A stretch of 64,000 bases of DNA, taken from the sequence record OR413578.1, one strand, 5' to 3'. Positions 1,317 to 36,555 of the stretch are shown here, one piece after another (positions within the stretch are counted from its first letter, which is position 1; each line of letters opens with the position of its first letter). Made by a program: the position numbers and the translations under genes. The notes below the pieces were generated by a model that was given only the letters and a program-made list of their open reading frames with translations, was not told where the DNA came from and made no database searches.

Positions 1317-1794
1317 CGTTAATCACCACTTGGCCAAAGTGGTGCTTTTTACTGTGCTGCTGATGGCACTTGTTGTTGGGCTACGGATTTCTAAGGCGCA
1401 CGCTGACGAATTCAGCGGGTTCCAGGGCAGTATTAACGGCAGCATTCCAGCATATACCCGCACCATCAATCTTAATGATAAGCCGTTCTGGTGCAACGCG
1501 CGTAAGCTGCTTAAGAAACAGTGTCGTGTAGTTGACATATCCTTCAACGGTCGTGTCGCTATCGTACACCGTCCGGGCGATAAAGATTGCCCAGGTGGTT
1601 GGTGGGGTGCAGTCGACCGTCACAACGGTGACGCGTTATGGCTTATCCCTAATCGTGATGAACTATCAGTGGAGAAAATTTGCAGCAAAGATTTCAGGGC
1701 CGGTTTTGTACAGCGACCTGATACCAAAACTCTGGCCTCCATCGCTATGTACTACGGTATGGAAACCATCAAAACAATCGACTATTCAGAATAA
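1303..1794 (+). CDS. Secreted/periplasmic protein, Cys-pair paralog 2
   Basis: ATG 1303 after GGAG; hydrophobic leader ending AHA; four Cys (FWC..C..DCPGGW..ICS). Confidence 0.8.
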   Translation: MKYNNVNHHLAKVVLFTVLLMALVVGLRISKAHADEFSGFQGSINGSIPAYTRTINLNDKPFWCNARKLLKKQCRVVDISFNGRVAIVHRPGDKDCPGGWWGAVDRHNGDALWLIPNRDELSVEKICSKDFRAGFVQRPDTKTLASIAMYYGMETIKTIDYSE

Positions 1795-1816
1795 CTCAAA
1801 AAATTGAGGTGCTATT

Positions 1817-2227
1817 ATGAAACATTTTTTATTACCAGTTTTACTTGCTACTCTGGCCATTAGCTTCTTCGCTCGTGCTGGAAGTATCGAGTTACCAAAA
1901 GTTGTTAACGATCACGAATACGGCGGACCCTTCTGGTGCCAGAACTCTGACGTACAAGGCGGTAGCTGCCAGATCGTTGCGATGTCCGATAACAACCGTT
2001 ACCTGTTAGTGAAAACTATGGGCGGCGTCGCATGTGGCGACCCTGAATACGGAGTTATTAACATGGCAACCGGGCAAGCCGAATCCATGAACTACAATGA
2101 TAACCAAGCCTGCAGTGGTGAAGCCGTTGCTGAGTTTACTCGCGACCCAGGTGATAATGCCCTGACGGTTATCATGTACGACCCTACGATTAAGAAAAAC
2201 GTAGGTATCAATAAACTCGACTTTTAA
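1817..2227 (+). CDS. Secreted/periplasmic protein, Cys-pair paralog 3
   Basis: GAGG RBS; signal peptide ending ARA; four Cys (FWC..SC..ACG..ACS). Confidence 0.85.
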   Translation: MKHFLLPVLLATLAISFFARAGSIELPKVVNDHEYGGPFWCQNSDVQGGSCQIVAMSDNNRYLLVKTMGGVACGDPEYGVINMATGQAESMNYNDNQACSGEAVAEFTRDPGDNALTVIMYDPTIKKNVGINKLDF

Positions 2228-2240
2228 GTAAGGAAACAAC

Positions 2241-2624
2241 ATGCGTGGATTTATGGGTATTATCGTGGCGGTGTTCTTTACCGCTTCTGCTTCAGCTACA
2301 ACCAGCGTAGAAGATTTACTACCAGGCACACCGTATCAGTACAATCCGCCTTCGTTCGAAGTCTGTACTGGCGACGATGGTAGATGTGAAGAAGTCAGCC
2401 GGCACGACGAGTATATCCTGGTCCACGCAAAGGGCGAGGAAACTTGTCCGGCAGGTTACTACTTTCTGTTGAACTCAAAGGCACAAGAGATTGTGCCTGT
2501 AGAGACAATAACGTGCGACCCGACGCTTCGCGCGTCGCTCGCATACAATACGAAAACCAAACAACGCCTCCTGGTTATTGAACAGCAAGGGGTGGTGCGT
2601 GGTTCAGTAGCGCTCGACCAGTAA
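2241..2624 (+). CDS. Secreted/periplasmic protein, Cys-pair paralog 4
   Basis: AAGGA RBS; signal peptide ending ASA; four Cys (VC..RC..TCPAGY..TCD). Confidence 0.85.
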   Translation: MRGFMGIIVAVFFTASASATTSVEDLLPGTPYQYNPPSFEVCTGDDGRCEEVSRHDEYILVHAKGEETCPAGYYFLLNSKAQEIVPVETITCDPTLRASLAYNTKTKQRLLVIEQQGVVRGSVALDQ

Positions 2625-2633
2625 CCGAAAAGT

Positions 2634-2658
2634 TTTCAGACAGATGTTATAACGTGAG
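2634..2658 (+). promoter_or_regulatory. Early promoter motif variant
   Basis: TTTCAGACAGATGTTATAACGTGAG aligns with the 816, 26228 and 57918 copies. Confidence 0.6.
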
Positions 2659-2678
2659 ATGACGACCCATCTCACTTT

Positions 2679-2723
2679 GGCCCTGCGGCGATATCCCCAA
2701 CACTTAGCCGCAGGGTCCTTTTT
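2679..2723 (+). terminator. Terminator-like hairpin in the leader of the 2754 gene
   Basis: GGCCCTGCGGC/GCCGCAGGGTC 11-bp stem, 17-nt loop, then CTTTTT. Confidence 0.6.
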
Positions 2724-2753
2724 AATCGACTATTACTCGTAAGGATTAAGCAA

Positions 2754-3254
2754 ATGAACATGAACATTCTCGACGATACCCGTTCTTCTTTCTTTACTCA
2801 GATGAACGTCAATCCCGAACGTACCCGCGCTATTCTTTCCACTGGCTGGAAGTTAAAACTGTTAGGCGAGTTAACCCTAAACCGCACCGACTGGCCAGAG
2901 GAAGCGACCGTATTGATTAACAGCATTCACAGCGAGTGGCTAGATGCTGCGTTGAATGCCCCACAGCTTCGCCCGTACTACCGGATGCTCCATGCAGGTT
3001 ATGAAGTGTACCGCAAGGGCTGGTACGATGCAGCCACCTATCGTAGCACCCCTGAAGGTCGTGAAGACAACACTGTCGACCACGTATTAGTAAACAATTT
3101 CTGGGGCGACCAAATCGAAGTCTTACAACTTTCCACCGGTGACCGTATTCCGGCCTGTGAGTTATTCGAAACTAACGCACAAATGTACGAACCGTATGCA
3201 ATGATACGTGGCCGAAAAGTCCCTATCATTTCCCTTATGCATATGGGGCTGTAA
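2754..3254 (+). CDS. Hypothetical protein
   Basis: 166-aa ORF, AAGGA RBS. Confidence 0.85.
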   Translation: MNMNILDDTRSSFFTQMNVNPERTRAILSTGWKLKLLGELTLNRTDWPEEATVLINSIHSEWLDAALNAPQLRPYYRMLHAGYEVYRKGWYDAATYRSTPEGREDNTVDHVLVNNFWGDQIEVLQLSTGDRIPACELFETNAQMYEPYAMIRGRKVPIISLMHMGL

Positions 3255-3261
3255 ATACGAG

Positions 3262-3290
3262 AGGTAGCCTACGGGCTACCTTCTTTTTTT
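3262..3290 (+). terminator. Intrinsic terminator
   Basis: AGGTAGCC-TACG-GGCTACCT followed by TCTTTTTTT. Confidence 0.85.
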
Positions 3291-3308
3291 GTTGAAGAAG
3301 GATTAAAC

Positions 3309-3935
3309 ATGAACGAAATTACCCTGATTCGTTTCATCGACGACATGGTGACGTGTCAGAAAGCGAATCGTCAGGACACGAAACTGCGCATCAATCTGAT
3401 GGAAGAAGAAGTCGAGGGGTTTCTGGAATACCCGCGGCTAGTAAAGTGGTTTAAAGAAGCATTACCACGTAGCTGGGAACAGCTCGAAGCGTGGTTTGCT
3501 CTACCTATTGCAGAACGTAATCCCAACAATACGATCTTCACCGGAACTACTGCATTAGATTTGGCTGGTTCGGTGGAGCAACCTAAACGTTTAGTTTTCT
3601 TCTACGTCAATGGCGATTCAATAATGGCTGATACAGTTAACTGGATTTCTGATGAGTTGACTGTAAACACCACTTTGGTCGGTAGCGCTGCTGATGCCTG
3701 GGTTGTTGGCCAGCACCAATCGCAACCGTACGAAGAAATCAAAACCGGCTATTTAATCCCGATATATCTCGACGGCGTGGCACCCGGTCGTAGTGCCGAA
3801 CTGTTCAAATTCCTGCTTACTGAAACGTTAAAGGTTGTCGATTCTGATGCCGGGCGGGCGTGGTATGAATTAACCAAAGAGCGCACCGATAGTTTTTGGG
3901 AATCACTCGGACACCGTAAGTTTATTCCGCAATAA
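3309..3935 (+). CDS. Hypothetical protein
   Basis: 208-aa ORF, AAGGA RBS. Confidence 0.85.
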   Translation: MNEITLIRFIDDMVTCQKANRQDTKLRINLMEEEVEGFLEYPRLVKWFKEALPRSWEQLEAWFALPIAERNPNNTIFTGTTALDLAGSVEQPKRLVFFYVNGDSIMADTVNWISDELTVNTTLVGSAADAWVVGQHQSQPYEEIKTGYLIPIYLDGVAPGRSAELFKFLLTETLKVVDSDAGRAWYELTKERTDSFWESLGHRKFIPQ

Positions 3936-3945
3936 CTCACCTCTC

Positions 3946-3978
3946 TGGAACCCTTCGGGGTTCCATTTCTTCTTTTTT
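3946..3978 (+). terminator. Intrinsic terminator
   Basis: TGGAACCC-TTCG-GGGTTCCA followed by a T tract. Confidence 0.85.
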
Positions 3979-4031
3979 ACGCATGACCTTTTGGATATGA
4001 ACGACTAATACTTTCTCATTAGAAGGCAAAC

Positions 4032-6542
4032 ATGCTCAAGGTCGAACGTATCATTTTGAAAGGATTTACCGGCATGGGGTTACATGAAATCGAAACGTTT
4101 GATTTCACCCTTAAGTCAACCGTTACCATCATCCTCGGTGGCAACGGCTGCGGTAAAACAAGCCTCCTATCTGTTTTTCTCCCCTTAGCTCCAGCAAAAT
4201 CAGAATTCCGTGAAGGTGGTTCCTACACTAACTACGCGTTAGTTGGGGACGACCGTCTTAAGTTTGAAGTCCTGCGACGCGGGTCTTCTTTGTCTTGTAG
4301 TATTTTCAATATCACTAAAGGTGTCTCCATCGTAGACTCGGTAAACGCCAAAGTTTACAACTCCATGGTGGAGCAATTAACCGGAATCACCAAAGAAATC
4401 AAAGAGTTAATTAATGGTGAGACCTTATTAACTGACGCCACTACCGAAGTTCGTCGTAAATGGTTTACGTTAATGTCAGAATCTGATCTGACGTACGTTG
4501 TTGGTTGCTATCGACGTTTGCGTAAACTCGCTTCCAGTTTAAGTGGGGCCATTGAGCACACCGGACGAAAAATCGGCGAAGCAAAAATGCGCGTCGTTGA
4601 TGATGAAGAAGATCGTGCACGTTTAGAAGTTCGTTTGAAAGAACTCGATGCTGAGCTTCAGGAATTAAACCGCACAATTGAAGCGAGACCCGGTTTAGAT
4701 AACGCCGTTTCGGTTGATAGTATCCGGAAACGCATTGCTTCGTTGCAACCGGCTGTAAAACTCATTATGGAACGTTATGGCGTTCTGCCTTCTGACGAAC
4801 TGATTAACGAGTTTCAAAGTCGTGTGGTTGCCTGGCGTGAGCAAGCTGCCTCTGCTGAAACTGAATGCAACATGTACAATAAAGAGTTGTCACAGCTACT
4901 GGATGAGGAGTCGCGTCAAGCGTATCTGATGCGCAACCATACCGGTCTAAAACAAACAATCGACAGCTTAAAACAGGAACTGGCAACGTTCCAACAGAAC
5001 TGGATGTTCCCGGCTCTGTTTGAAGGTACCCGCATTGATGTGGATAGCATTCAGAACGCGTTAAACGATGCCTGTAACTGGAATTTACCGTTGTCCATGC
5101 ATTTGGACCAGTTAAAGACAACAGATCGCCTGGGAGCGTTAGAGAAGCGTTTACAGGGTATGGATTTAACCTCTGCGGGTCTATCTGAAAAGCTGCAACG
5201 TTGTGAGAATGTGCTACACGGTTTATACCACGACCGTCAACACTTCTTAGAAACTGCAGAAGTTGATTGTCCACAGTGTAACCACCGTTTCCGTCCTGGG
5301 ATTCGTAAGTCGTTACCTGAAATTGAAAAGGCCATCAACGATAATGAAGGTTGGAAGAAGCAGCTGAAAGACGAAATGGATAGTCTTTTGCGTGACCGCA
5401 AAGAGATTGAAGAGGACGTCCGTAGCTTACGTACGATTCGCGAAATCGTCATGTCGTATTCCAACCATCCTGTTGTCGGTTTGTTTTTCCGTAAACTGCA
5501 GGAGCTGGATATCTTCACCACGGCGCGTGATCGTTACGGTGCCATTGCACGTGCCTTTACTGAAGAGCTAGATTCGGCCATGATGTATCTGCGTCAATCG
5601 GCGAAGCTTGCAACAGCGGAACGGGAATGGCAAGAGGCTGTTGCCGCAGTAGGTAACGTTGATGGTGCGCTGAGCCAGAAAATTGAACATATCCGTTCAC
5701 AACTGGACGGGGCTAACCGTCGACTGATAGAATACCGCAGACAAGCCAATGAGCTGGAACGCGAAACCACCCAACTGCAACAAACCAAAGAAGCAATCGA
5801 ACGTTTCCAAAAAGGCTACGAACATCTGGTATCGGAAATGAACATCTCCGTTAACAACGTCGTGGTTCGCGAGTTGTTAAACCGACGCGAAGCGAAGCTC
5901 GATGCGTACACTTCCGCTCGTGAGCGGTTTCGTCAAATGGAAGGGGCTATTGCACGTTTAGCGGAATTAGAAAAAGAGCAAGCTGAGTTGCTCAAAGAAC
6001 ACCATCATGCCAGATTGATTATCAATGCCGTCTCACCCGAAAAAGGATTATTGCGTCGTTACTTTTATGCTGCGATTACCCGCATCATGGATTTAATGAA
6101 TCGGTATATCGAAATGGTGTGGGCATATCCGATGCAGGTTATTCCATGCGATCTAACCGACGGGGATTTGGATTATACTTTCCCGGTGCGATTAAAAGAC
6201 CATGAAGAACTGGTGCCGGATGTGAAGAAAGGTTCGAAGGCACAGCGTATTATCTTTAACATGATGTTTCGTTTAACGGCGTATAAAGCGCTTGGTTTAC
6301 AAAACTATCCTTTGTTATTGGATGAACCCTCTGAAGGCATGGATGAAGAACACAAAAATCGACTGGTCAACTTCATTAAATCGTTGGCGTTGTCGGGAGA
6401 GTTTTCTCAATTGCTGGTCGTTTCGCATGAAGCGGAAGTTCATTCTAAACTTAACGAAGCCACCTACTGTGTCGTGGAGCCAGAAGGTGTAACGCTTCCA
6501 CCGGTTTATAACGAAGGGGTAATAATCAAATATGCATCATAA
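4032..6542 (+). CDS. sbcC: SbcC/Rad50-like SMC ATPase (recombination nuclease subunit)
   Basis: Walker A GGNGCGKT, long coiled coil with central CPQC zinc hook, signature-like GSKAQ, Walker B LLLDEP, H-loop VVSHE. Confidence 0.93.
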   Translation: MLKVERIILKGFTGMGLHEIETFDFTLKSTVTIILGGNGCGKTSLLSVFLPLAPAKSEFREGGSYTNYALVGDDRLKFEVLRRGSSLSCSIFNITKGVSIVDSVNAKVYNSMVEQLTGITKEIKELINGETLLTDATTEVRRKWFTLMSESDLTYVVGCYRRLRKLASSLSGAIEHTGRKIGEAKMRVVDDEEDRARLEVRLKELDAELQELNRTIEARPGLDNAVSVDSIRKRIASLQPAVKLIMERYGVLPSDELINEFQSRVVAWREQAASAETECNMYNKELSQLLDEESRQAYLMRNHTGLKQTIDSLKQELATFQQNWMFPALFEGTRIDVDSIQNALNDACNWNLPLSMHLDQLKTTDRLGALEKRLQGMDLTSAGLSEKLQRCENVLHGLYHDRQHFLETAEVDCPQCNHRFRPGIRKSLPEIEKAINDNEGWKKQLKDEMDSLLRDRKEIEEDVRSLRTIREIVMSYSNHPVVGLFFRKLQELDIFTTARDRYGAIARAFTEELDSAMMYLRQSAKLATAEREWQEAVAAVGNVDGALSQKIEHIRSQLDGANRRLIEYRRQANELERETTQLQQTKEAIERFQKGYEHLVSEMNISVNNVVVRELLNRREAKLDAYTSARERFRQMEGAIARLAELEKEQAELLKEHHHARLIINAVSPEKGLLRRYFYAAITRIMDLMNRYIEMVWAYPMQVIPCDLTDGDLDYTFPVRLKDHEELVPDVKKGSKAQRIIFNMMFRLTAYKALGLQNYPLLLDEPSEGMDEEHKNRLVNFIKSLALSGEFSQLLVVSHEAEVHSKLNEATYCVVEPEGVTLPPVYNEGVIIKYAS

Positions 6543-30954: not shown

Positions 30955-31377
30955 ATGAACAATATCGCGTTTGAAAAAGGCGTTGGCTTACTTCTGAACA
31001 ACACCATCATCGCTGGCACTAATAACGCTAACTGGGAAGCGTTAGCACAGCGTCTCAAAGACAAGCCTGTGAAGATTGTGGTAACGAGCGAGCTGCCGTT
31101 AAACGGCACGATGGCAGACTGTGGTCCAATGTTTGCAGCGTTTAATGTCGACTATGATTGCGGCTCCGCTTTCTTACAAAACGCCGCGTTACGTAGCCGT
31201 CTGTACAGCTGGCGTTTGCTGGGTCCGGTAAGTAAAGCCGCTGGCCAGATGGTTAACCAGGGCACACCGATGTCGGGTGTAGAAGACCAGACTATCGCCG
31301 TTGTCGTTTCTCGCGCAACCGGCCAGCTTAACTTTGCAATCTGCTACGCGTATCAGGAGGAGGAAGCCTGTGTTTAG
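30955..31377 (+). CDS. Hypothetical protein
   Basis: 140 aa, AAGGAG RBS. Confidence 0.85.
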   Translation: MNNIAFEKGVGLLLNNTIIAGTNNANWEALAQRLKDKPVKIVVTSELPLNGTMADCGPMFAAFNVDYDCGSAFLQNAALRSRLYSWRLLGPVSKAAGQMVNQGTPMSGVEDQTIAVVVSRATGQLNFAICYAYQEEEACV

Positions 31378-32239
31378 TATCATTCAGCAAGTTCAAGCGG
31401 TCGAAGAGTGGTTTCGCAAGACGGATATCTACCAACAGAAAGCGACTGAGCGTCAGTTGGTAAAGTTTTACGTCACACTCGGCAGGATCTCAGCAGGTGT
31501 CGATGAACTGGATAACTTAAAGGTGGCTGCCGGTATCGGTGAATCGATTTGGACATTTGCCGCGCTGCTACACCTCGGCCCACATTCTAACCTCGGTGAT
31601 ATTGTCGTTCCGTTGAGTGATGCGGTGTCTGTTCGTACTACAACTGGCACGAAAGAAGGACAACTGCAGCAACTCATGTTAATTGCGGTCGAGGCCGTTA
31701 GTGTTGTTTTGCGAGAACCAGAACATGACCCTAAGAGTTACAGCGCGTTGCTTCGTAAGTTGATGAGGCAGTATCAATTGTTAGCGTGTCGCTGCGGGCT
31801 GGAGTTTGACCGCGTTGTTTTTAATGGCCATCGTAAGCTCGTTAAGACGCCTGAAACGACAAGCACGCTCGGAGAACTGCTCAAAGCAACGTTGCCGTTA
31901 CCCGACGACGATTTGGCGAAACAAACCTATCAGACGGTGTACAAAACCAACGAGTCAGTTCACGACATTATTGTAAATTGTCTTTTGGCCACATCGAATG
32001 ATTTACAAACCGAGCATAACGGTGAAGTCGCCATGCCGCAGCTATTGCTGCGGATGGAGGACATTATGAACGAAAAGCTGCAAGAGCTTCTCAAGGCGCA
32101 CTTTGAACCGTGGATAGTAAGAAAACAAATGTTGTTCAATCGTAACCCTCGCGTTGATGTTAAGTTCGATGGTAACGCTGTAAACATTTGTGCGAACGAC
32201 GATTTAAGAGACATTTTAAATTTATTGAAAGGAAAATAA
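31370..32239 (+). CDS. Degenerate MazG-like fold protein
   Basis: GTG 31370 after GGAGGAGG; N-terminus aligns by eye with the MazG domain at 35599 but lacks the acidic metal ligands. Confidence 0.5.
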
Positions 32240-32241
32240 TT

Positions 32242-33279
32242 GTGAAACAGTATCTTGAGATGATGCAGAACATTCTGGACGAGGGTCATGTTAAGGGCGA
32301 TCGTACTGGGACAGGGACGCTCACCGTCTTTGGTCGCCAAATGCGTTTTGATTTGCGCAAAGGTTTCCCGTTAGTCACGACTAAGAAACTCCACCTGCGT
32401 TCTATTATTCACGAACTGCTGTGGTTCCTTAGTGGCGATACCAACACCAAATATCTGGAAGACAACGGGGTCACAATCTGGCGTGAGTGGCAAGATGAGA
32501 ACGGTGACCTAGGTGAAATCTATGGTGCACAATGGAGACGTTGGAAAGATGTGAAACTGGTGCCTAAGAAAAATGCAGCTTTACTCGAGAAACTGCAAGA
32601 TGCAGGATACGTGGATTATGGCGACGCGGACGACGGTTCACAAATGTTCGATGCGCGTGTACTTCTGAAACTACACGACCAAATCTCTAAGGTGATTGAC
32701 CAACTGCGTAACGATCCTGACAGTCGCCGTATTATTGTCAGCGCATGGAATGTGGGTGAGTTGGATCAAATGGCGTTAGCGCCGTGTCATGCGTTCTTTC
32801 AGTTCTACACTCGTGAGCTGTCTATCGACGAGCGTCTTGATTGGTTTGAAAAGAACCTTCCAGATCAATTTAACGATTCCCGCTTTAGTAATGAAGCTGT
32901 TGCAGACGACGCAGTGTTCCACGTTGAGATGGACGCACTTGAAATACCTCGCCGCATTCTTTCATGTCAGCTCTATCAACGCAGTGCGGATTTTTTCCTC
33001 GGCGTGCCGTTCAACATCGCGTCTTACGCATTACTCGTGCACATGGTTGCCCAGCAGGTTAACATGGTGCCGGGCGATTTCATTTGGACGGGCGGTGACA
33101 CACATCTCTACTCTAATCATCTGGAGCAGGCCAAGCTGCAGCTGACGCGTGAGCCGTTACCTTTACCGAAACTGATCATCAAGCGTAAACCGGAATCTAT
33201 CTTCGATTATAAATTCGAAGATTTTGAGATCGTTGGGTATCAGTCTCATGAAAAAATATCTGCGCCTGTCGCTATCTAA
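32242..33279 (+). CDS. thyA: Thymidylate synthase with two insertions
   Basis: [53 protein letters not shown]; GTG 32242 after AAAGGA. Confidence 0.97.
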
Positions 33280-34856: not shown

Positions 34857-35336
34857 ATGTCTATAACTCGGATCGATTATCGTGCCGTAGTAAAAGAACT
34901 GTCCAAAGGTCTTATCGAACTGGACTCCGATGAAGCCCGCAACTGTGGCTTCCTGCCACACATTGCACTGAGTGAGTTCCGTACCATCCGTTATGGTGCC
35001 GGTCGTCAGAAGGGCGTTACAACACACGCCGTTGATATGTCAGCAAAGTTCCACGGCAGCGTTCTGTATCTGGTCCACAATGAATCGTTACGAAACGAAG
35101 TAGTGGAGAAGTTCCATGAAAAGGCTGCCGGGAACGGTTGGTTGACCGTGCACTGTAACTACTTGCCTGAGGGTTGGAAACACGCGACGGGTGCTGGTAT
35201 ATCCGGCTACGAGAAATTCGGCTTGGTTATTGTCGACGAAGCGGGTTTCTTCTTCAACAAGTTCAGTTACGATAAAATCTATCGCAGTCTGGTCGACGTA
35301 GTAACGCCAGACGTTGTGATTCACCTGATTAATTAA
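34857..35336 (+). CDS. Single-domain P-loop NTPase (helicase/terminase-like, atypical Walker A)
   Basis: YGAGRQKGVTT, VLYLVHN, LVIVDEA. Confidence 0.6.
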   Translation: MSITRIDYRAVVKELSKGLIELDSDEARNCGFLPHIALSEFRTIRYGAGRQKGVTTHAVDMSAKFHGSVLYLVHNESLRNEVVEKFHEKAAGNGWLTVHCNYLPEGWKHATGAGISGYEKFGLVIVDEAGFFFNKFSYDKIYRSLVDVVTPDVVIHLIN

Positions 35337-35348
35337 GTAGAGGAAAGT

Positions 35349-35537
35349 ATGGCTGGAGAACTCGGTCGTGGGCAAGCCACAACGTTCATGTATCGTGATG
35401 GGTTAGGTGCGGATGTAAACATGTCTCCGGATGACGAGATGGTTATCCCTGGACTTGACCCGGACGCAGGTGTGGAAGGTGGCGTTGACCCGTCGAAAGA
35501 CGACGACAACTGCACCGGTGGTGCGTGCAAGATTTAA
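35349..35537 (+). CDS. 62-aa acidic peptide ending in an NrdA-like CX4C tail
   Basis: GAGGA RBS; ends DPSKDDDNCTGGACKI; followed by a terminator. Confidence 0.8.
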   Translation: MAGELGRGQATTFMYRDGLGADVNMSPDDEMVIPGLDPDAGVEGGVDPSKDDDNCTGGACKI

Positions 35538-35545
35538 AATACGTA

Positions 35546-35582
35546 TTAGGGTGTCCATATGGACACCCTACTTATTTTTTGT
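35546..35582 (+). terminator. Intrinsic terminator
   Basis: TAGGGTGTCC-ATAT-GGACACCCTA followed by a T tract. Confidence 0.85.
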
Positions 35583-35598: not shown

Positions 35599-36555
35599 AT
35601 GGGCGAACGTTTCATTATCCAGATTCCGTATAACGTTATTGTTGAACCTAACCAGTACCTGGCACAGATTAATGAGCTTCTGGCTGGGTTCTGCCAACGT
35701 CAGTTTGTTAAACCGTGGTCCTTTGAGAAACTGTACACCCTGTGCGTGAACAGTGAAACCGGTCACACTTACGTCGAAGGTAAAGTCTTCACAGGCGACC
35801 AGCGTTTGGAAATAAATGATTTCGAAATGCCATGGACGTTGGAAGGTGTCGAATATCGTGGTACGGTTGATCGCCCGCGTTACGTGCCTTTGTACACCAT
35901 CCCACAATGTATTACTAACGTTATGGGTTGGTCTAAAGCGCGTGGTATTCTGGATAACGGCGTCTGGTATAGCCAAGCCACCAAACTCTACGAAGAAGAC
36001 GGTGAAGCAGCAACCGGCATCAGCAAAACCAAAGAACGTCTTATCATGGACGGCCTAGGCGATGCAATGGTGGTACTGGTTAACGTCAACGCCTTGGTAG
36101 GTATGCCATCCAAGTTGGTTTCTGTCATGCTGTCCCGTGGGCGCGCACGTCTCGAAAAGAACGTTCCATTTGGCGATGCCCATCGCTTGTTCCACAAAAT
36201 GCGATTGGCCTTCACGTTGATGCACGATATTGTCTATCAAGGGGCCGATCGTCGTAACCAGCACCAGGGCACTTATCGTTTTACCGAGAGTGACGACGAT
36301 CTGATTATCGAATACGAAGAGCAGATGACCGTGGCACTCTATTACATGGAAGCACTGGCGCGAACGTACAACATTACCCTGGAACAGTGCTTCTCACTGG
36401 CTTGGGATGAAATCAAAGACCGTAAGGGTTTCCTGAATGCGGATGGCATCTTCGTTAAAGAAGCAGACATGACCGCTGCTGAAATCGAAGTAAACGGTTC
36501 CCTTACTGTAAAAGATGAGGCGTTTACCGATGGCGAAGAAACTGTTCACGGTTGA
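35599..36555 (+). CDS. MazG-like NTP pyrophosphohydrolase with an extra N-terminal domain
   Basis: WSKARGIL..QATKLYEEDGE..DGLGDAMVVL..CFSLAWDEIKDRKG. Confidence 0.8.
   Translation: MGERFIIQIPYNVIVEPNQYLAQINELLAGFCQRQFVKPWSFEKLYTLCVNSETGHTYVEGKVFTGDQRLEINDFEMPWTLEGVEYRGTVDRPRYVPLYTIPQCITNVMGWSKARGILDNGVWYSQATKLYEEDGEAATGISKTKERLIMDGLGDAMVVLVNVNALVGMPSKLVSVMLSRGRARLEKNVPFGDAHRLFHKMRLAFTLMHDIVYQGADRRNQHQGTYRFTESDDDLIIEYEEQMTVALYYMEALARTYNITLEQCFSLAWDEIKDRKGFLNADGIFVKEADMTAAEIEVNGSLTVKDEAFTDGEETVHG

Follow-up and report, generated by a model that had tools for sequence, protein, structure and literature searches.

A free-standing copy of the redox tail of ribonucleotide reductase in a Salmonella jumbo phage with no reductase of its own

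Introduction

Ribonucleotide reductase (RNR) is the only de novo route to DNA building blocks, and re-reduction through the C-terminal tail of its large subunit, NrdA, is half of its catalytic cycle. In class I RNR, the cysteine pair of the tail (C754/C759 in Escherichia coli) re-reduces the active-site disulfide after each turnover, and the tail is then itself re-reduced by thioredoxin, glutaredoxin or NrdH (PMC6187632, PMC11903788). The redoxins of this electron-supply chain can be encoded separately or fused to the reductase, as with the glutaredoxin domain fused to NrdB in Facklamia (PMC6187632). In eukaryotes the large subunit is also regulated by small disordered proteins, namely Sml1 of budding yeast and Spd1, Dif1 and Hug1. 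Sml1 is reported to interfere with regeneration of the large subunit by its C-terminal tail (Zhang et al. 2007, PNAS). No bacterial or phage equivalent of these regulators is known to us.

Here we examine a small open reading frame (ORF) in Salmonella jumbo phage SPLA1a (OR413578.1, genus Seoulvirus), within a window of 64,000 nucleotides that comprises the last 64 kb of the phage genome, with 100% identity over a 3-kb test stretch. An initial annotation, made from the sequence alone, had proposed that this ORF is a stand-alone mimic of the NrdA redox tail. That observation is confirmed by our analysis. Its interpretation is supported in part: the ORF is a stand-alone protein whose end copies the NrdA redox tail, whereas nothing shows that it re-reduces RNR in trans, raises dNTP supply, or acts as a decoy for thioredoxin or for a defence sensor.

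Results

A 62-residue acidic ORF with a ribosome-binding site and a terminator-like hairpin

The ORF lies at 35349..35537 (+) and encodes 62 residues plus a stop. It is annotated ‘hypothetical protein’ in SPLA1a (SPLA1a_PHROGS00233) and corresponds to SPN3US_0234/ACQ60_gp032 of phage SPN3US. A ribosome-binding site, GAGGAAAG, is found at 35340..35347 (+), five bases before the ATG. The stop codon is followed by an intrinsic-terminator-like hairpin of 10 bp with 6 G-C pairs (35547-35570) and a T-run, together spanning 35547..35582 (+) and ending the transcription unit. The protein is acidic (13 D+E, 4 K+R, pI 4.05), rich in Gly and Pro (15 residues), and ends in DDNCTGGACKI. AlphaFold2, run with an 8-sequence alignment, predicts no secondary structure (mean pLDDT 55, pTM 0.13), consistent with a disordered chain like that of the NrdA tail.

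Three parts can be distinguished. Residues 1-32 (35349..35444, +) form a variable, acidic N-terminal part that is not conserved in any of three alignments of homologs. It contains LGRGQ, which recurs in some longer homologs, and also the TFMYRDG segment that the initial annotation had likened to a stretch of NrdA; as this lies in the non-conserved part, the resemblance is probably chance. Residues 33-51 (35445..35501, +) form a conserved middle segment (IPGLD...VEGGVD...), which is shared with the phage and Neisseria-type peptides but is absent from NrdA. Within it P34, G35, L36, D37, P38, V42, G44, G45, V46, D47, P48, S49 and K50 are invariant in 8 phage sequences, and G45 is invariant and D47 at least 90% in 24 family members. 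Residues 52-62 (35502..35534, +) form the NrdA-like tail, with C55 and C60 in CX4C spacing, ending at the free C-terminus. C55, G58, C60 and K61 are invariant in the 24 sequences.

The last 11 residues follow the NrdA tail motif

To test the likeness to NrdA without presupposing any NrdA sequence, the end of the peptide was back-translated into the pattern C-x-x-G-A-C-K-I-stop, which occurs once in the window and in 0 of 100 shuffles. A scan of one genome per bacterial species with this pattern gave at least 120 loci. Of the 120 listed, 99 are the C-terminus of NrdA-like ORFs of Gamma- and Betaproteobacteria, about 760-800 aa long where the ORF is complete in the locus, and in 72 loci an NrdB-type gene follows. 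About ten matches are chance, in line with the number expected. The NrdA-like ORFs include those of Escherichia, Klebsiella, Citrobacter, Enterobacter, Erwinia, Proteus, Vibrio, Shewanella and Neisseria; a Salmonella NrdA itself was not among the 120 loci, and the enterobacterial tails seen are from Escherichia, Citrobacter, Klebsiella, Enterobacter and Erwinia.

In the 99 tails, Cys -8, Gly -5, Ala -4, Cys -3, Lys -2 and Ile -1 are invariant. Three positions that were not in the search pattern also agree: at -11, -10 and -9 the NrdA tails have D 79/99, D 92/99 and G or D 94/99, while the stand-alone peptides have D 27/33, D 27/33 and G, N or D 29/33. The two free positions between the cysteines use the same residue sets. 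An Escherichia sp. NrdA ends DDGCESGACKI, so that 8 of 11 residues are identical to the phage peptide. Searches of PDB sequences with the peptide and with its last 20 residues gave nothing relevant, and a profile search gave only a weak hit (E 4.7) to RNR alpha of Neisseria (7mdi_A), matched end on end over its last 12 residues; SMAD4 hits of similar weakness are chance.

We also asked whether the acidic/aromatic N-terminal motif mimics the NrdB tail that docks on NrdA. A PSSM of 50 distinct NrdB tails was scored against 2000 composition-preserving shuffles per peptide. The median p was 0.48, 5 of 33 peptides had p<0.05, and the window peptide had p 0.70; thus, the idea is not supported.

No reductase in two phage genomes

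The initial annotation had noted that no catalytic RNR domain is adjacent to the ORF, and this holds for the whole 240-kb genome. No RNR gene, and no redoxin, is annotated among the 255 features of SPLA1a, and tblastn with the 761-aa Escherichia NrdA and with its NrdB found no catalytic homolog. The best NrdA hit in the genome is its last 15 residues on the C-terminus of the peptide. The same lack of NrdA and NrdB, and the same tail-on-tail best hit, were found for Cronobacter phage CR5, which belongs to a different genus; these are the two genomes for which the absence of RNR was shown. Both phages carry thyA, thymidylate kinase and a MazG-like gene, and a dihydrofolate reductase is annotated in SPLA1a. 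Two adjacent radical SAM genes of unknown role are also conserved in both genera (SPLA1a record 151505-153740, outside the window, at 1505-3740 of the extracted locus L007; CR5 locus L142, 32830-34978).

The gene is under purifying selection in a conserved module

By tblastn the peptide was found in 72 phage records, from Salmonella, Escherichia, Proteus, Cronobacter and Erwinia jumbo phages, with tail-bearing copies aligned end to end in 37 of the 72. In the more distant records only residues 33-62 match, and in alignments the N-terminus varies freely while residues 33-62 are almost fixed. In Salmonella phages SPFM1 and SPFM5-SPFM15 (hits H45-H54) the region matches only in many short pieces and the peptide is split over frames, which suggests indel-rich assemblies rather than biology. 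A scan of viral contigs added only relatives of the same jumbo phages.

Over the last 30 codons the synonymous sites are saturated (pS 0.5-0.9) and pN is 0.03-0.19, giving dN/dS of about 0.04-0.2. For example, the window and CR5 differ by 18 synonymous and 2 non-synonymous changes in these 30 codons. The C-terminal 30 residues are 70-93% identical where the neighbouring gp232 is about 25% and ThyA 61-67% identical. A distant DNA search of the 3' end against E. coli genomes found no match, so this is not a recent capture of host nrdA DNA. The CX4C...CKI end is kept in every intact homolog aligned, although a few database copies are frameshifted and lack it. The two conditions that had been set beforehand as refuting the mimicry, an end not conserved among homologs or a broken nrdA remnant, were therefore not fulfilled.

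The gene order thyA, gp230, gp232, gp233, peptide, MazG-like is kept in Seoulvirus, Derbicusvirus and Erwinia phages, with a small rearrangement in CR5. The module begins with thymidylate synthase at 32260..33279 (+) (Pfam PF00303, E 3e-114), with synteny conserved in the compared phage loci L130-L135. The initial annotation had placed the peptide between thyA and a MazG-like gene, but thyA is not adjacent: four ORFs lie between it and the peptide. The MazG-like nucleotide pyrophosphohydrolase, at 35599..36555 (+) (PHROG 7855, E 1e-126) and annotated as such, is directly downstream. A second, divergent MazG-like ORF (31301-32239, +; PHROG 10269, with weak hits to MazG PHROGs) lies just upstream of thyA, so that the module is flanked by two MazG-like genes. 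In L131, from a metagenomic jumbo phage, thyA is matched in three separate pieces with unmatched DNA between them (2502-4396), which suggests an interrupted gene (intron, intein or homing element).

Immediately upstream of the peptide is gp233 (34857..35336, +), a 159-aa stand-alone P-loop NTPase-like protein with Walker A/B-like motifs, which is always next to the peptide in Seoulvirus and Erwinia phages and is 50-76% identical in Erwinia phages. Its AlphaFold2 model has pTM 0.71, and a Foldseek search with it found only generic RecA-like ATPase domains, giving no lead to a partner function.

Relatives on bacterial chromosomes

The genome scan also returned small ORFs with the same end in Neisseria (two loci), Rheinheimera (four loci) and a Pseudoalteromonadaceae MAG. 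A profile of 8 phage sequences, searched against 1.84 × 10^9 representative proteins, found 26 clusters at E<=1e-3, all of small proteins (39-157 aa) and all matched at their C-termini, one being a Neisseria meningitidis protein (P0023). A search with the Neisseria peptide found 74 clusters, named ‘hypothetical protein’ in N. meningitidis, Eikenella and Moraxella. The phage and Neisseria types share the segment that reads VEGGVD in the window (residues 42-47), which NrdA lacks, and the peptides are therefore one family and not independent copies of the tail. The window peptide has both features that define this family, the VEGGVD-like segment and the NrdA-type 11-mer at the extreme C-terminus. 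Several database copies of the Neisseria small ORF (P0060, P0073, P0075, P0077, P0087 and P0088) have a shifted reading frame near the 3' end and lose the tail, which could be sequencing error or phase variation.

The bacterial contexts differ. In Neisseria flavescens (locus L020, 497-1439, -) a 232-aa ORF that looks as if it has a signal peptide, plus the 42-aa tail peptide, lies between iscS and iscU of the isc operon; the 232-aa protein is unrelated to phage gp232 and gp233. In two of the five Rheinheimera-type loci the peptide is directly upstream of a catalase, and in Moraxella it follows aroE. None of these neighbourhoods contains nrd, trx or grx genes, although the bacterial relatives occur in taxa whose NrdA has the same tail. 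In one MAG, ‘bacterium CG10_46_32’ (locus L125, 3297-3785, +), a glutaredoxin domain, a Cys-rich middle part and an NrdA-like tail occur in one 162-aa protein, next to a restriction-modification pair. The extension of the family to bacterial chromosomes, which the initial annotation had missed, argues against a purely phage-specific (anti-defence) role.

Pfam (no hit at E<=0.1) and NCBIfam have no model for the family, and literature searches found no description of it. The window protein matches PHROG 38753 over residues 1-62 of 62 (E 3.8e-46), and also PHROGs 14561 (E 6e-16) and 24014 (E 7e-14), all of unknown function.

Discussion

The only strongly constrained parts of this predicted disordered protein are the middle segment and a C-terminal 11-mer that reproduces the redox tail of cellular class Ia NrdA. 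We propose, with moderate confidence, that the peptide is a trans-acting tail, recognized by the same partners as the tethered tail, namely the host redoxins and the NrdA active-site entrance. It would therefore act on the re-reduction half-cycle of the host enzyme, which appears to be the only de novo dNTP source for this RNR-less phage. We favour a booster role, as an extra diffusible electron shuttle, over a blocker, because the phage depends on host RNR and because the bacterial relatives sit in oxidative-stress or Fe-S-stress contexts, where more dNTP supply is the usual response. This proposal rests on sequence, without experimental or structural evidence of any interaction. A tethered tail has a high local concentration, so it is unclear that a free copy adds flux; the conserved middle segment has no counterpart in NrdA, and the bacterial gene neighbourhoods are inconsistent. 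What the analysis establishes is the mimicry, its conservation and the selection on it, the (predicted) disorder, the absence of a reductase from the two phages and the distribution of the family, whereas translation of the ORF, the partners, the redox chemistry and the direction of the effect are inferences.

The same mimicry could serve other ends. A free tail might occupy the site used by the tethered tail, or form a mixed disulfide there, and so stall re-reduction in a manner functionally analogous to Sml1. Invariant cysteines fit a covalent trap as well as a shuttle, and the stress-linked bacterial contexts could equally fit a checkpoint, but SPLA1a and CR5 have no RNR of their own while carrying other nucleotide-metabolism genes, and blocking the host enzyme would starve the phage unless host DNA breakdown suffices; we consider an inhibitor unlikely. 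The main alternative, though also a doubtful one, is a decoy or substrate for thioredoxin or glutaredoxin, which would soak up or redirect host redoxins, or a small dithiol redox buffer or sensor whose target is not RNR. The NrdA tail is a redoxin substrate, the bacterial copies lie next to catalase and inside the isc operon, a glutaredoxin-plus-tail fusion exists and the acidic lead-in is kept. However, this does not explain the fixed position in a nucleotide-metabolism module, nor why the whole NrdA-type end, including the terminal K-I and the free carboxylate, is kept.

A metal- or Fe-S-related role, in which the Cys pair on a very acidic chain would bind iron or a cluster and serve Fe-S or NrdB cofactor maintenance, is suggested by the position between iscS and iscU. 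It is very unlikely, as the isc context is confined to Neisseria, two cysteines alone make a poor cluster site, and the 11-residue match to NrdA would be left unexplained. We also rejected a ribosomally made, post-translationally modified peptide precursor (RiPP). The protein is small and Cys- and Gly-rich and the phages have radical SAM genes, but these are about 58 kb away in SPLA1a and about 30 kb away in CR5, the neighbours are ThyA, proteins of unknown function, a P-loop NTPase-like protein and a MazG-like protein, no maturase lies near the bacterial homologs examined, and the conserved part is the end that equals an unmodified enzyme tail. Although the ORF is short and its similarity to NrdA is limited to 11-15 residues, a non-functional nrdA remnant or a chance ORF is refuted by the selection on the last 30 codons, the C-terminal match in all 26 clusters, the end-to-end phage copies, the lack of DNA similarity to E. 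coli genomes, the ribosome-binding site and terminator, and the absence of the pattern from 100 shuffles.

A broader reading, which we offer only tentatively, is that detached RNR tails are a so far unrecognized class of small proteins, diffusible copies of the NrdA redox tail that carry electrons to, or gate access to, the class Ia RNR active site. Bacteria (Neisseriaceae, Moraxella, Rheinheimera) would use them under oxidative or Fe-S stress, and RNR-less jumbo phages would have adopted them to tune the host's dNTP factory. This would be the first bacterial or phage counterpart of the eukaryotic small RNR regulators, and the first case of an enzyme's mobile tail encoded as a separate gene. 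A separately encoded tail would be a new way to regulate or hijack RNR, conserved from jumbo phages that lack the enzyme to human-associated Neisseria. It would give RNR biochemists a natural probe of the poorly seen tail-docking step, and phage biologists a handle on how nucleus-forming jumbo phages secure dNTPs without their own reductase. It also assigns a testable role to three PHROGs of unknown function and to a widespread Neisseria small ORF that is usually left as hypothetical.

Compared with the tail of class Ia NrdA, the peptide follows the same motif column by column, with an acidic lead-in, CX4C spacing, a free K-I C-terminus and a disordered chain, but it has no catalytic ten-stranded barrel (Pfam Ribonuc_red_lgC/lgN) with the active-site cysteines, no ATP-cone and none of the rest of NrdA, and it is encoded alone in a genome without RNR. 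Like Sml1, Spd1, Dif1 and Hug1 it is a small, predicted disordered protein that plausibly acts at the interface between the tail and the active site of the large subunit; there is no sequence relationship to them, as judged by the absence of any Pfam hit, and those eukaryotic proteins do not copy the tail. Like the redoxins dedicated or fused to RNR it may be an accessory part of the electron-supply chain, but it has no predicted thioredoxin fold and no CXXC motif, and copies the substrate end of the chain, not the reductase. PHROGs 38753, 14561 and 24014, to which it belongs, carry no functional annotation and are not linked to each other or to the bacterial homologs. The tails of phage-encoded NrdA also have a cysteine pair near the C-terminus with an acidic lead-in, but those of T4 and GAP32 have CX2C and that of PhiPA3 ends differently; the peptide matches the cellular, host-type tail instead.
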